In this document: positions 25,667 to 52,050 of the stretch, one piece after another
Position numbering within the stretch: the stretch's first letter is position 1
Layout of the letters: every line of letters begins with the position of its first letter
NCBI RefSeq assembly: GCF_964204645.1
Contig: NC_134030.1
Coordinates: 8,165,122 to 8,229,121, forward strand
Direction of reading: 5' to 3'
Source of the DNA: Tubulanus polymorphus
Lineage: Eukaryota > Animalia > Nemertea
DNA length: 64,000 bases
Program-made: the position numbers and the translations under genes
Notes under the pieces: generated by a model
What the model was told of the DNA's origin: nothing
Database searches by the model: none
Seen by the model: only the letters and a program-made list of their open reading frames with translations

Positions 25667-27361
25667 ATGTTCGACTCTGGCGAGTGAGGATCTGCCAGGA
25701 AGGCATTCAGACTCCAACGTCGATTCAGACATATTTGAAAATCAACTAAATTCTGACAAGTTGTCGCATGAAAACGTACGCCATCTAGCGGGATAGCTGG
25801 TGACACGGGTACCTCATTGCTGCAACCAGTAACCAGTAACCTGCACTCGGCCGCTGCACCTCTTATCAAATTAGGTGCATGAAAGACTTCAATAATACCA
25901 CTACACTCAATCATAATGAAGTGTACCTTACCTGTTGGCGACTGTCTGACCTTTTACAGGAGACACCAGCCGTACAATAGGCAACACTTGTGTCTAGGTT
26001 GTCATCAAATTGACGATATATCAGTACAAAATACCATCAGAGACTTCACTCGCATCGGAAACATTCAGTAACTAGGTGGCTACCAACATCATTATGAACA
26101 AGAACATGTATCATTACGACCATTATGAACATGTACATCGAACAACGAAGCAACTTTCTCCGATAAGCAATGACCGCCGACATGATATTTCGATTAAAAC
26201 CATAAGAAGAATAGGTTTTCCCGAGAAAAAAACTACAGACTCCGCCTGTATCAGAACTTTTACTAAGATAATCCTTCAAAGTGCTCGCGAATGCGACTTG
26301 ATCGCAAGTAGATTGATAGAGACTGCGATCGACTGCTTTAGGTTGATTCCGGAAATTGAGCTAATCTCATCGCAGTGGGTGACCAAGTACATCAATTGAT
26401 CGAATAATCACACCGAAGATAGGTCGAATAATTGCGCTTCAATGAACGTGTATTCGTATATGACCACGCGCAATTTTTCTCAGACAGGTGTTCCCGGAAT
26501 CAGAGAAGGAACGCAAACATTGCTTGCCCATCTTCATGGCCTATAGAAAGGAACAATGTTTGTTATTTGAAATGGCAATCTACAAACATTTAATCCATGT
26601 ACGATGGTAAACAATGAAAAATGCCGGCTTTGATGCTGTGATTACAATAAAAAGCTACAAGGCTTCGCTGATGAGAGAGACAAAGAAAAACTGTAATAAG
26701 CACTAGCATCAAAATTGACAGACTGCACGAAATGTGTGCAAAAAACTATAATCTAACCTATCGCGGTAACGGTTTGAATACAATTCATTGATCAGCGTAT
26801 ATCATATTCGGCGAAAAAAGAAGCTCCGCAGACTCGTCGTCATCGTATGAAGCATTTAAAATCGAATCAACGTCGAACGCGTTTAAGCCAGCGACACTCC
26901 AAGTGCACTTGAATCAACTGTGTATACATGACGAGAATGTCTGGGGCAGCGGTGCAGATCTTTACCGACACCGACGAATGAAACGTGCAGACTCAGGGTT
27001 CGAGTGAGACTGCGACAATTCCCCTCGCCACTCCCTTTCTGCCCACGTCCGCAGAAAGCATCGATATAATTCAATCGCGGATTACGCTTTTTTAATACGC
27101 GCAACTTCCCGAAAAAGAAACTATCCCAGCAAACTAAGGACCGGACCTTCTTTTCTCTTCGTGGAAAATTCCGTCGACAATTCCGTCGACGCGCACGTAT
27201 ACACAGCGAACTCGAGAACACGTCCTTCGACGTTACATTCTTTTCTTTTTTTAAATACAAAAATACGCAACACCACGAAACAAAAGCAACGAACAGCGTT
27301 TTACAGACATCAGGCTTTATAGCGATACCCACCCATTTTCCGACGCTGTGCATCGCGCTGA

Positions 27362-27448
27362 AACCAATCTCCCGATTCCAGAGATCCTAGCCTGGGAATG
27401 TCATATCCCTAATCACAAGTTAGGGTCTCAGGGAAAGGGCTAGTGGTT
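27362..27448 (-). ncRNA. mir-125: mir-125 (lin-4 family) precursor hairpin (mature 5p 27434-27413; star about 27395-27374)
   Basis: Minus strand reads UCCCUGAGACCCUAACUUGUGA, the canonical miR-125. The 3' arm CCAGGCUAGGAUCUCUGGAAUC pairs with it, and the basal stem AACCA/UGGUU is present. Confidence 0.98.
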
Positions 27449-28782
27449 GCCGTCGCCGAGCGACGGGTCGTCGGATATTCCAGCCCAGTCTCCTGCCCAC
27501 TGGATGTTTTTCATGTCGTCGAACCGCACAGGAATAAAGCGCCTGTCTGCCACTAGTGGCAGCGCGATCGTTCCAGACATTAACTCTTCCGCTATTCAGT
27601 CAGTCTGAACGCAGTGAATCAATACCACAGCCGCAGTCTGCTGCCTTGCGCGCTGTATGTTTTCATGTTTTCGTTGTATACCTTTTAAAACACAGCTGCT
27701 ATTGCATTTTTATAACGTTTTTATTGTTGCCGCTGCCGCTGCCGCCGCGCTATATATTTCTATACTTGCATAGATTTTAATAACCCTAGGCAACAACCAA
27801 CGCTATATCGGAGGATTACGACAGAAACTCTCTCCAAGTATGCAAGCTTTCTTTAATAACTTCGCCATCAATCCTGAATTGAAATATTGTTGTATCAGAC
27901 TAGAACTAAACAACGTTGGCCCTAGTATAAAGCTTAAAACGAAAATTACACCCATTACCATATTTCCCAGACCAAACAAATCAATACCAAATACATATAA
28001 CTAGAAAGTAGTTGAATTCGCCTGTATCATTTACCTCGCATAGAGTGGTGGTGGTTACTGGAGGTTGAGACTTGCTTAACACCATAAAAAGGGCGTCGTC
28101 AAAAAGGGCACAATTCTATCGAAGATGAATCAGAAAAGGACAATTCAGTCAAAAATGTGGCCCCGCTATTGGATTGTATCTTTTGACAATGACATTTTCT
28201 CAGGTACGCTGCCGTTTTTCATATCAATTAAACCGGACAGGTAGAGTTACCCGCAGAGAGAGAGACCTTCGACGATCTCGAATCAGACACTTACGATATT
28301 TATCTAATTATTGTTATTTTTTCAGTTGCCCGGACAAGCAGGTAGTTAATAGCTATACGCGGCGTTTTCTCATCGATCAACGTCTAGCGTTCACGGCGAA
28401 TCAATCATATAACATTAAGAGAGCCCCCCTCGACCGACAACGTGTAATACTAACGCCATCAAACATTCCAATTCCACCCGCGGGAGATCTCTGGCCGCCG
28501 AGGGACGACCAACGCTGCAGCTTCCAGACATACAAATAACTGCTTATACGTATATAGGCATGAATTACGTAGTCCCACAATGGAATTTTATACAATAAAA
28601 TTCATCAAAACGACACCACAACATTTTGGCTGTTGACTAACAGCTTGCATCCAGGCTGCTCGTCGACAGAACGTTTTAATTCAATCATATAAAATTCCTT
28701 TGTGGGACTTCTTGATTCAAGTCTACATGGATTAGAGAGTTTTATTCGACTACTAATGTAGGCATTTTTCAAACATACACAA

Positions 28783-28921
28783 CAGGGCCCAGTTGCTCAA
28801 CAGTTGGTGACAGTTAACCAGTTGATACCGGTAGTTGACATAGTGACCATTAAAAGTTCATTGTTACTATGGTATTTATCCGCCGGTTATCTTTTACCAA
28901 CTTTTGAGCAACTGGCCCCTG
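28783..28921. mobile_element. PIF/Harbinger-like palindromic MITE between let-7 and mir-125
   Basis: CAG-GGCCCAGTTGCTCAACAGTTGGT ... ACCAACTTTTGAGCAACTGGCCC-CTG. Confidence 0.75.
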
Positions 28922-29239
28922 CATTTTAACGTCAACAATGCCATAAATCCCGCCACAGACCAGTTATCAACTGTTTTCCATCATTGGAGCTATCAGTCTC
29001 ATTAAAACAGGAATTGCTTCAGTAATTGAAAACGAAACAAAAAAACCCAGAAAAATCAGTGAAGCTCATTAAACCCCTGGGACTTCAGACGAAATATTAT
29101 GAATGAAGCTAATCTATATGATCGGGAGAGCATGCGATGTATATCCTTACCGTGATGAATACTTTTCGTAAAACCGACGAAAAGAGTAAAATATTTGAAA
29201 CATGAATAGAATATCTATATGATGAGCTTGCGATGTTCA

Positions 29240-29330
29240 GGGCTCCCCCAGGGAAAGCTAGAAGATTGTACAGTTCTCCTGTTTTGATGTTATGCCAACT
29301 ATACAACCTACTACCTCATGCTGAAGGCTG
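29240..29330 (-). ncRNA. let-7: let-7 precursor hairpin (mature 5p 29318-29297; star 29273-29252)
   Basis: Minus strand reads UGAGGUAGUAGGUUGUAUAGUU, the canonical let-7. Star is CUGUACAAUCUUCUAGCUUUCC, the loop contains GGAG, and a CNNC motif (CAUC) lies 17 nt after the 3p end. Confidence 0.99.
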
Positions 29331-29839
29331 CCAAAAAGATCCTCCGATCAACTCTCTCTCGCTCTTCCGCAGCAGACATCCTTCGCAAACGCGCTAACCA
29401 CTCTTGTTTATAAATTAAGTATTAGAAGTTCAGGATTAAATGGTTTTTTTCCTATAAGACAGTACCTGAAATACAAGTCGACAATCTGACTGTTCCCGAC
29501 AGTACGAATAAAATTCATCGCTCGAGTAAAGCTTCATCGAGGTTGATGTCAATTGGAACGGTATTCGATGAATTGAATAAAATACCGACAACAAAATGGC
29601 TGCATTCGTATCTTACAGCCGATTCAGCATCAGCCTGTGATGAGACGTCTAGACTCGATGCGGAAAAATTAAAGTTCTTGACATGAAGAACGAGATTGAC
29701 GCTCAAGGCGATTGCGCTTATTTCTCGAATAACACCCCCCTCACAAAAAAAAAAAACGTTCACCCATTTCATACCGACCTAATGTCTTAACAAAACTCCA
29801 TATAACACGGGATCGTGGTATGCCGATATACCCCATATA

Positions 29840-29912
29840 GCAACACATACCCATAAATCCGACCTTGTGGGTTCTGTAAGGCTTACAAGTTCGGATCTAC
29901 GGGTTTATGCAG
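29840..29912 (-). ncRNA. mir-100: mir-100 precursor hairpin (mature 5p 29905-29884; star 29867-29846)
   Basis: Minus strand reads AACCCGUAGAUCCGAACUUGU(A), identical to miR-100 over 21 nt. The 3' arm CAAGGUCGGAUUUAUGGGUAUG pairs with it and resembles known miR-100-3p. A lower stem is present. Confidence 0.98.
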
Positions 29913-32119
29913 CTTGGTAAAATTCTGATCATCGTCGTCGTCCGATGCACCGTCGAAGTCACCTCCCGTATTCCGCAGTCGAATCCTACAAAGACACGAA
30001 ACAGAATAACGAAATTAAATACTTGCGATACATTCAATGATTTAATGGAATAGTTAACGGTGTCGGGTTTCCATCTCTCAACCGTGTAGCTATTAATAAA
30101 AAATTAAAAACACCGGACGAATAACGAAATTCCACCGTCGGGGAAAGTTCGATGAAAGTCAAAATATTTCCGCGAACATTTCATTGAAATATGAGGTTAA
30201 TTCGGTTTTTAATCCTAGGTAAGAAGCTCGGTGAAACCGTGGACAATTCCGTCCATTCAGAAACAGCCTTGCTGAAAGAATTAATAATTTCAATCTGATT
30301 CGGCTGATGAATATACGTCCCGCGGAAAACATGTTCTTCAAATTTCCCATACAAAGAAACGGATTAAGTTACGACCCCCCCCCCCATGGAGATAAATGGT
30401 ACTACGTGATTACAGTGTGGTTGCGACCAAAAAAGGCGCTGTAAGTATAATGAGCAATGCGACTGAAGCATTGCAACACAGACAGGATAGCTCTAGGTGT
30501 CTTACGCTAGACATCTGTAAGACCCCTAAAAATTTTCAGTGCCTAGCGTATCAGCGTTTATAATTTTGTTGAAAGAAAACCTAAAACAGTCTAATTTCTA
30601 TAAAATAAAAGCCAATTTTGTTGGCAATTCTGGTAAGGTGTCCTTTTCACATCGATTTTTGGTAAGACGATCAGATCTCGCATATAGAGAAATTCATCTT
30701 GAAATCCTGCAAACGTTATACTCAAACTGTGAGAGATATTTAGGCAATGTTAGTGCTTGTACACGCTTACTACCACCAGAGCAATAGTCTCGATATATCG
30801 CAAAAAGATTTTCGTCGAAATCCCTCTCAACTACACCATGCGGCACGTATGTGCAGCCAATATGTAAAATTGTGCGAACGTGAAGGTCGATGGGAGCTTA
30901 CACACGCAGAGCTTCGTCTGTCAAAGTCACTCGGTGCAAAACATTTCAGAGATGATGAAAAATGGTTGCGAGAATTAAACGTTTTGCACGCTGGCATCTG
31001 CATGGTGGTGGCGGCGGCGCTAGGTGACATGTCAACGATCGTTCTCGTTTCACCCGTAGAAATTACGAGTGAAAAAGCAGGATAATAACCATCGTCGAGC
31101 AGACAAGAAACATCAGAACACTGTATAACATACGTATTTTTATAAGTAAAATTGATAAAATATTTGCGTAAACACTGCATTCGCTGCTACGTTGTATATT
31201 GCCATTTTGTATATTGTAATTTTCACTCACATTGTCTAAATTGTCGACCTTGAGTTTGTCAAATAAACAGTAACTGTAAAATACCAAATAGACTGATGCA
31301 AATGCAAACGTCTCTTATATTCCGTCGAACAATCTAGCTAGTTTTTAAAGACTGCGCTTGATTAAAATTTTTTGATTCGAAAACCTACACGCCAAACAAC
31401 ATTTACGACGAAAAGAAAAAGGAAAAAAAAATGCGAGATCAACCAACGCGATGATCGCTCGCAACTCGGTTTCAACTAAATATGATTAATCGGAACAATT
31501 TTAAACAAATTAATCCGCGCAACTGATGATGCCTGCAGTTAAAATGATTTAATCCGGGACGACTAAAAAATCCGCCACCACCGATGTAGACATATTATGT
31601 ATCATCCGTACTGGAATATCAGGAAGATTTTTATCAAAGACACCCACTCTACTTCTATTTACAATTTTGCATAATGGATTATGCTTGTAATTAAAAATGA
31701 AATCTTTATGGGGGGGTCTTGTTACCTCCACCACCACCACTGTGTCGCGATCGGCAATTTCTCTTTCTCCGATCAATTCCGTAAGCACGTCGCATTGACG
31801 CAAGAAAAAAACAACACTATCACCGGCCAGTACACCGGTGGCGTATATACCGAGTATTACCCTACCCATAGCACTGCCGCCGCATTCTAACCACTCATTG
31901 TTTGATTGATCGATTCGATTCCGCTATACACGAATAATAAACTGAAATTTTAACGATATCTCGCCGACGAAAACCTTTTAAACAGATTGATTACTATCGG
32001 GGCTTGAAAGAAACAATTAGCTAGATACGCAGCAGCACAGGCTACATGAATCCACGAGCACTACTACACTGACTAGTAAAGCAGTATAGCACATGCACTA
32101 ACATTATTGGTAAATAGGC

Positions 32120-32521
32120 CCTCAGGTCGCCCTAGGACAGGTATAACCCGATTGGGGAGAGCACTCAGGTCACTATAGTAGTGATCATACCAACATTTTT
32201 GGCCCTGGCCAATTCGACCTGTGCCCAATTCCGGATGGAACAACAGTTCAAATGGACAGGGGCGAAATTTTCACATAGGGCCAAATTTTTGCGACGCATG
32301 AATTGCTGCCACTGGTTCCTGAGGTGACTCGCTTCAGTTCGTATAAGCATTGATCAGTATCGGGTGAGTGGTTAAATTTGACTCTGAACCGTGAACCGTG
32401 CCAGTTTGACCCGGGTCAAATCATCTCCGTGTGACTAAAGATTACAAGCAAACCGGTCAGAGGTCAACTTCCGCAAGTCGCAGAGCAGCGGTCTGGTCGT
32501 CGCCTACACGGTCACTGATCG
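32120..32521. promoter_or_regulatory. Cluster of nuclear-receptor half-site repeats (candidate hormone-response enhancer)
   Basis: AGGTCG-n4-AGGACA (32124-32139), AGGTCA (32167), TGAACC-g-TGAACC (32385-32397), palindrome TTTGACCCGGGTCAAA (32405-32420), CGGTCA-g-AGGTCA (32454-32466), CGGTCA-c-TGATCG (32509-32521). Confidence 0.55.
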
Positions 32522-50989: not shown

Positions 50990-52050
50990 TATGTTCAATC
51001 CCGTCCAAACCAATTGGACAAGTTCAATCTCCGCCATACCAATGGGAAACATTCAACCACACCAATTCAATTCCGATTCAATTCTTCCACACCAATTCAA
51101 TTCTTCCACACATGTTCAATCTTTTCCATACCAATTCAATTCTTCCATGCACCAGATATGTCCAATCTCTTCCATACCAGTAGGAAATGTTCAATCTTGT
51201 CCATACCAATTGGACAAGTTCAATCTCTTCCACACCAATTCAATTCCTCCATACCAATTGGACAAGTTCAATCTTGTCCATACCAATTGGACAAGTTCAA
51301 TCTCTTCCACACCAATTTAATTCTTCCACACCAATTCAATTTCTCCATACCAATTGGACATGTTCAATCTTGTCCATACCAATTGGACAAGTTCAATCTC
51401 TTCCACACCAATTTAATTCTTCCACACCAATTCAATTCCTCCATACCAATTGGACATGTTCAATCTTGTCCATACCAATTGGACACGTTCAATCTCTTCC
51501 ACACCGATTTAATTCTTCGACCCCAACTCAATTCTTCCATACCAATAGGACAAGTTCAATCTTGTCCATACCAATTGGACAAGTTCAATCTCTTCCACAC
51601 CAATTTAATTCTTCTACACCAATTCAATTCCTCCATACCAATTGGACAAGTTCAATCTTGTCCATACCAATTGGACAAGTTCAATCTCTTCCACACCAAT
51701 TTAATTCTTCCACACCAATTCAATTCCTCCATACCAATTGGACATGTTCAATCTTGTCCATACCAATTGGACAAGTTCAATCTCTTCCACACCAATTTAA
51801 TTCTTCCACACCAATTCAATTCCTCCATACCAATTGGACATGTTCAATCTTGTCCATACCAATTGGACACGTTCAATCTCTTCCACACCAATTTAATTCT
51901 TTCACCCCAACTCAATTCTTCCATACCAATAGGATATGTTCAATCTTGTTCATACCAATGGATTATAAATTTCATCCATACCAATTGGACATGTCCAATC
52001 TTGTCCATACCAATTTGACATGTTCGATCTTGTCCATACCAATTCAACAC
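50990..52050. repeat. Satellite with a 96-bp higher-order unit (29+29+19+19 bp)
   Basis: CCAATTGGACAAGTTCAATCTTGTCCATA + CCAATTGGACAAGTTCAATCTCTTCCACA + CCAATTTAATTCTTCCACA + CCAATTCAATTCCTCCATA. 96 bp is 32 codons, which explains the 334-aa and 300-aa ORFs. Confidence 0.95.

Follow-up and report, generated by a model that had tools for sequence, protein, structure and literature searches.

The genes for mir-100 and let-7, together with that for mir-125, belong to a cluster that was born in the bilaterian ancestor around an older mir-100 (Mohammed et al. 2014, PMC4238352). In most protostome clades, the three genes form one tight cluster that has been taken as a polycistron; among the lophotrochozoans, the same survey names the annelids Capitella and Platynereis and records losses in flatworms as well as a missing mir-125 in Lottia (Hertel et al. 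2012, PMC3384580). MirGeneDB 3.0, to which the nemertean Lineus longissimus, of the same phylum as Tubulanus polymorphus, has been added with its own entries, likewise treats the LET-7 cluster as ancestral. In vertebrates, the gene order is the same in the MIR100HG, MIR99AHG and mir-99b clusters; however, these three paralogous clusters are accompanied by let-7-only clusters, have spacers of up to 46-50 kb and are carried by long non-coding host genes, whereas T. polymorphus has one compact copy.

The locus considered here lies in a window of 64,000 nucleotides, that is, the whole stretch of T. polymorphus DNA that was analysed, and the coordinates given below count from its first letter unless a contig is named. 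With a probability of roughly 90%, it is the animal's single let-7 complex, in which three real microRNA (miRNA) genes share a strand, follow one another in the ancestral order and are most likely carried by one transcript. T. polymorphus is said to be a palaeonemertean, and we take it to belong to a class other than that of L. longissimus. The likeness to the typical protostome cluster of Hertel et al. 2012 extends to the same three miRNAs, their order, their common strand, their single copy and a span of a few kilobases, whereas the differences from the protostome and fly loci are two MITE-like insertions in the spacer between let-7 and mir-125 and an A instead of a G at position 22 of miR-100. 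The expression and the hormone control of the fly locus are known; no paper describing a mir-100/let-7/mir-125 cluster in T. polymorphus was found. The locus is what the published surveys predict, a single compact cluster being expected in a protostome; it is real but ordinary and would not surprise a specialist.

A direct reading of the sequence between 27300 and 30000 places, on the minus strand and in the order in which they would be transcribed, miR-100 at 29905-29885, let-7 at 29318-29297 and miR-125 at 27434-27413. An earlier note on this DNA had proposed this order and strand, and all three mature sequences were found at the positions that it gave; its claim of exactness is borne out by 22-mers of let-7 and miR-125 that are identical to the canonical sequences and by a miR-100 that is exact over 21 of 21 nucleotides. 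These canonical forms of let-7 and miR-125 are those of vertebrate let-7a and miR-125b. The spacing of 0.57 kb and 1.86 kb that had been noted corresponds to measured gaps of 566 nt from the end of miR-100 to the start of let-7 and of 1863 nt from the end of let-7 to the start of miR-125, and the whole cluster (29912-27366) occupies 2.55 kb of the single minus strand, which keeps the order 100, let-7, 125 within 10 kb. The identification of the locus as the conserved mir-100/let-7/mir-125 cluster likewise stands, with exact mature sequences, the canonical order, one strand, a length of 2.55 kb and a match to the Rfam family mir-10.

The uniqueness of the three sequences was determined in the animal's own 268-Mb assembly with up to two mismatches allowed and with reversed patterns as controls; the size of this assembly agrees with the 313-358 Mb that flow cytometry gave for T. 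polymorphus (PMC8468679). Under this search, miR-100 and miR-125 each have a single genomic match, which is the cluster locus, and their reversed controls have 0 matches. For let-7, one extra match with 2 mismatches was obtained on contig C2, a different chromosome, and the reversed control gave 1 match; this candidate for a second let-7 was rejected, since it has a broken seed and does not lie in a hairpin of miRNA type, and since matches to the reversed control were equally frequent. The let-7 at 29318-29297 is therefore the only intact let-7 in the 268-Mb genome. Three unique 21- to 22-mers that lie on one strand, within 2.55 kb and in the canonical order exclude a chance origin of the matches.

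Folding bears out the hairpins that had been described for the cluster: each mature sequence forms part of the 5' arm of a hairpin and faces a partner arm, with energies of -38.1 kcal/mol for mir-100 (z -5.6), -35.2 kcal/mol for let-7 (z -3.0) and -31.2 kcal/mol for mir-125 (z -2.2), the last of which has a bulged stem. Below the mature sequence, each of the three hairpins continues into a lower stem of about 11-13 bp, and a lower stem of this kind is needed by Drosha substrates. A CNNC motif follows the predicted Drosha cut in each case, at +21 in mir-100, at 17 nt in let-7 and at +15 in mir-125, and the partner (3p) arms given below were predicted with a 2-nt-overhang model.

The mir-100 precursor hairpin (29840-29912, minus strand) is identified by its Rfam match, its fold and its uniqueness in the genome. 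Scored against Rfam mir-10 (RF00104), the hairpin at 29912-29840 reaches 52.7 bits (E 3e-10), above the gathering score of 47.5, and the seed ACCCGUA, the mature sequence and the covariance model all assign it to the mir-100 branch of the MIR-10 family. The mature miR-100, AACCCGTAGATCCGAACTTGT, occupies 29905-29885 and is followed by an A at 29884, so that the 5p product with position 22 included spans 29905-29884, opposite a predicted 3p arm at 29867-29846. That the genomic base at position 22 is A and not the usual G had been remarked upon before and is correct. The A abolishes the terminal G-C pair found in the Rfam mir-10 consensus; in the fold, the loop opens with it as an unpaired base, and neither the seed nor the 3' supplementary region includes it. 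As for an assembly error or a polymorphism, this explanation was rejected on the evidence of Illumina whole-genome reads (run X5) from another sample and study with the same species label, which were mapped on 26100-32000 and for which no difference is listed at 29884 at a depth of about 5-6x. The A is thus probably genuine; being unpaired, in the loop and not part of the seed, it is probably trivial and without consequence.

The let-7 precursor hairpin (29248-29324, minus strand), supported by Rfam RF00027, by its fold and by its motifs, carries the 5p product at 29318-29297 and a predicted 3p arm at 29273-29252. Its 22-mer agrees at every position with the mature part of the Rfam let-7 consensus and contains the seed GAGGUAG, and 19 of the 22 mature positions are paired; membership of the LET-7 family follows from the canonical mature sequence and seed and from a position on the 5' arm with a partner arm at an overhang of about 2 nt. 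Searched at permissive thresholds, the hairpin at 29324-29248 aligns with RF00027 over the full length of the model and scores 51.1 bits (E 1e-8), 2.4 bits short of the gathering score of 53.5, a deficit due to a loop that is shorter than that of the consensus; the gathering threshold is the curators' cut-off, not a biological criterion. Like its vertebrate counterparts, the hairpin has a star arm that resembles the Rfam let-7 consensus. It also carries a GGAG at 29279-29276, in the loop and directly before the 3p arm, and GGAG at the corresponding position of pre-let-7 is bound by vertebrate LIN28.

The mir-125 precursor hairpin (27366-27445, minus strand) is recognized by its exact 22-mer, its fold and its position in the cluster, with the 5p product at 27434-27413 and a predicted 3p arm at 27396-27375. 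It falls into the mir-125/lin-4 branch by its seed CCCUGAG, a mature sequence identical to miR-125 and its location on the 5' arm. In a search of 141 bases, the Rfam models did not recognize it, as lin-4 (RF00052) gave 16.5 bits against a threshold of 40 and mir-10 (RF00104) gave 10.7 bits; such recognition is a convenience threshold, not a defining trait. The arms align with the models, and the loop and the star arm differ from the sequences from which the models were seeded, so the assignment of mir-125 rests on mature identity, hairpin shape and cluster position.

Across the whole window, a single Rfam family, mir-10 (RF00104), passes the curated thresholds, and the matches that mir-10 and mir-3596 have on the plus strand mirror these same cluster hairpins. 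When all 64 kb were searched against Rfam at permissive thresholds, no further credible miRNA appeared, the matches elsewhere being low-complexity chance matches. The open reading frames of at least 150 aa near the cluster, including the one at 26883-27353 just past mir-125, have no Pfam match. In the assembly, a search for COX1 gave no match.

The spacer between let-7 and mir-125 contains two inverted repeats, both of which are MITE-like insertions. The first (28783-28921, assigned to neither strand) forms a 146-nt hairpin with a fold of -65 kcal/mol; its ends are terminal inverted repeats, as seen in an alignment with three other copies, and its family has 83 scored matches across the genome, next to 1679 first-look candidates, at 83-90% identity. 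Over this element, the X5 depth rises to 190-570x per strand versus about 5-10x in the flanks. The second and older element (28552-28728, likewise assigned to neither strand) has 51-nt arms, a fold of -56 kcal/mol and a raised read depth; across the genome, its family has 57 scored matches, next to 266 first-look candidates, with identities of 71-87%. Both families are spread over all large contigs, and as dispersed repeat families the two inverted repeats were rejected as extra miRNA hairpins. If transcribed, both elements would form very stable hairpins; without the two insertions, the spacer measures about 1.55 kb.

The same spacer harbours a candidate intron of the primary transcript (28116-29150, minus strand), delimited by the best donor and the best acceptor in the DNA between the hairpins: a candidate donor at 29150, in which ACG precedes and GTAAGG follows the cut, and a candidate acceptor that ends in CTTCGATAG before the cut at 28116. 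Splicing between these two sites would remove both MITE-like elements. This candidate intron is put forward as an idea only, and it is prompted by the splicing reported inside such clusters, for which an intron between let-7 and mir-125 has been demonstrated in an acoel and predicted in 63 clusters from 43 bilaterian species (2026 preprint, bioRxiv 10.1101/2024.12.01.626237).

These observations bear on the alternative that survives best, according to which the three miRNA genes are real and yet form no obligatory polycistron, since mir-125 might be driven by a separate promoter within the spacer, or the output of let-7 and mir-125 might be uncoupled by splicing between them. Such uncoupling would suit a gap between let-7 and mir-125 that is three times that between mir-100 and let-7 and that took two transposon insertions, as well as the strong donor-like and acceptor-like sites that flank both of them and the precedent of the acoel. 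Against it, the splice sites were ranked with a rough, home-made scoring scheme that had no control, and it is established that comparable tight clusters on one strand, such as that of Drosophila, are polycistronic in every case that has been tested (Hertel et al. 2012, PMC3384580). The alternative is accordingly considered unlikely, and the reading of the locus as a single let-7 complex that most likely yields one transcript is retained.

Further evidence comes from the classical targets of these miRNAs. Among the NHL-repeat genes, a 785-aa open frame on contig C3 was found to be the TRIM71/lin-41 orthologue, matching the solved filamin-NHL structures of TRIM71 at E 1e-176, compared with 1e-48 for TRIM3 and 1e-45 for TRIM2. 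Past its stop codon, let-7 has a perfect 8-mer at +931 and miR-125 has one at +40, both of which are candidate 3' UTR sites. For five TRIM-NHL open frames, the 4 kb that follow each stop codon were scanned; there, the four frames other than lin-41, including Brat-like and TRIM2/3-like ones, contain no let-7 or miR-125 8-mer, with two of the four having one weaker 7-mer site each. Similarly, a Lin28-like gene on contig C1, with two exons for the cold-shock domain and one more that encodes a pair of CCHC knuckles closely similar to the Lin28 motif, is followed by a perfect let-7 8-mer 857 nt past the stop, again as a candidate 3' UTR site. In 250 kb of this genome, true sites included, the let-7 8-mer occurs at a background of 0.018 per kb per strand, so that one site behind each classical target is unlikely by chance; the chance of finding it in the first kilobase behind both is roughly 3 in 10,000. 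The perfect sites for let-7 and miR-125 that follow the orthologues of lin-41 and lin-28 lend indirect support to a role in developmental timing.

The matching 8-mers behind lin-41 and lin-28 also weigh upon a second alternative, by which the cluster would be a relic, decaying or silent, that is no longer expressed and whose sequences persist by chance or through recent ancestry. This explanation can draw on nothing other than the missing RNA signal in the available RNA-like runs, in which X7 and X6 gave no contig on 26100-32000 and X8 matched the transposon only; such runs consist of contigs assembled from ordinary libraries and would not reveal RNAs of 22 nt. In contrast, three perfect mature sequences within intact hairpins, all of them the sole genomic copies, and target sites that have been retained elsewhere in the genome make a relic very improbable.

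Contamination or mis-assembly, by which the cluster would come from the DNA of another animal, has a negligible chance of being correct: nothing was found in its favour, other than that mature sequences identical in many animals are by themselves no proof of origin, whereas the cluster sits within a 23-Mb contig of chromosome scale, is broken by two repeat families with hundreds to thousands of copies on all large contigs, and is covered contiguously by the independent X5 reads at a single-copy depth of about 5-10x. No part of the window looked human. Among the variants listed from these reads at their modest depth, beside which stand 32 weaker differences, single-nucleotide polymorphisms occur in the flanks and none inside the three hairpins.

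For the single let-7 complex favoured here, the sequences, hairpins, uniqueness, order, target sites and loop motif are direct observations, and that the genes are transcribed together, how they are processed, when they are expressed and whether they repress their targets may be inferred by analogy with the behaviour of the family. In such a course of events, RNA polymerase II would start from a promoter upstream of 29912, at higher coordinates, and most likely produce one non-coding primary transcript. Past mir-125, the first canonical AATAAA is 6 kb away, and ATTAAA variants are located at 267 and 769 nt. From the transcript, Drosha (in the Microprocessor) and Dicer would release three duplexes, the 5' arms of which would be kept and loaded into Argonaute. 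Subsequently, let-7 and miR-125 would be expected to repress lin-41/TRIM71 and Lin28, factors of stem cells and early stages, through the predicted 3' UTR sites, with a repression presumably timed to the stage at which the animal leaves an early, proliferative state, and Lin28 could in turn restrain the maturation of let-7 through the GGAG in the precursor loop.

The chromosomal surroundings of the cluster add one more observation. A ten-gene, co-oriented homeobox array is located at C6:5.32-5.63 Mb, on the same 23-Mb chromosome as the let-7 complex, and holds an exact miR-10 (C6:5,479,994) together with three diverged miR-10-type copies. All MIR-10-family genes found in the genome, namely the four mir-10-type copies in the Hox array, mir-100 and mir-125, are consequently on one chromosome and within about 2.8 Mb, with 2.56 Mb between the let-7 complex and the last Hox homeobox. 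Random placement would bring the complex this near to the Hox array in about 2% of cases, a figure that belongs to a post hoc observation. To our knowledge, such a linkage of the let-7 complex with Hox genes is absent in flies and vertebrates. One might regard it as what remains of ancient duplications, local ones, from which mir-10, mir-100 and mir-125 arose, in which case the let-7 complex would have been born beside the Hox cluster; this interpretation is a long shot.

Altogether, the locus provides a coordinate-level annotation of the let-7 complex for a ribbon worm, in a phylum with very few miRNA annotations. Slightly beyond the routine are the two transposon hairpins in the presumed primary transcript, the candidate intron and the linkage to the Hox chromosome. 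Together with the lin-41 and lin-28 target sites, the cluster makes up a parts set for studies of developmental timing or regeneration in nemerteans.

Between let-7 and mir-125, the cluster contains two MITE-like inverted-repeat transposon families (window positions 28783-28921 and 28552-28728), which have hundreds to thousands of copies in the genome; the element at 28783-28921 is ~140 bp long, and its terminal repeats start with CAGGGGCCAGTTGCTC. This ~140-bp element is also present in the assembled contigs of one RNA-like sequencing run (X8), and some copies may therefore be transcribed somewhere in the genome. Upstream of mir-100, a further element of moderate copy number is suggested at 31222-31418, where read depth is ~4-5 times that of the flanks and variant positions are numerous.

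Further upstream, nuclear-receptor half-sites (RGKTCA) number five in the 500 bp of window 32001-32500, where the average for the whole window would give 0.66, and they include an abutting pair, TGACCC/GGGTCA, at 32407-32418; the sites lie ~2.2-2.6 kb upstream of mir-100. The enrichment is only modest, because two other bins, at 51001-52000, are equally rich in half-sites.

Two open frames, both on the minus strand, were searched against Pfam, and neither yielded a match. The first is a 156-aa ORF with an ATG start (window 26883-27353), beginning 9 nt past the mir-125 hairpin region, which is probably a chance ORF in view of the ORF density in the window. The second, of 504 aa, is located ~15 kb before the window (C6:8,148,175-8,149,689; L013:3054-4568 in the local piece); the atlas clusters closest to it in language-model features comprise FAST-kinase/RAP-domain mitochondrial RNA-binding proteins, which offers a weak lead only.

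Elsewhere in the animal's own assembly (G000), three TRIM-NHL genes each seem to occupy a single uninterrupted open frame of 770-787 aa: lin-41/TRIM71 on contig C3 (L035:7324-9678, minus strand), and a Brat-like gene (L034:1152-3512) and a TRIM2/3-like gene (L036:595-2904) on the plus strand of C5. Hence, the coding parts of all three may be intronless or nearly so.

The chromosome that carries the let-7 complex, C6, also carries a Hox-like array, which precedes the cluster by ~2.56-2.85 Mb; the window occupies C6:8,165,122-8,229,121. The array (C6:5,318,228-5,634,747) consists of ten homeoboxes, all co-oriented. An exact miR-10 lies at C6:5,479,994, flanked by homeoboxes at 5,460,591 and 5,498,579, and three diverged miR-10-type copies are located at 5,357,989, 5,402,703, and 5,524,869. 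As the let-7 complex resides on the Hox-array chromosome, all of the MIR-10-family genes found fall within ~2.8 Mb.
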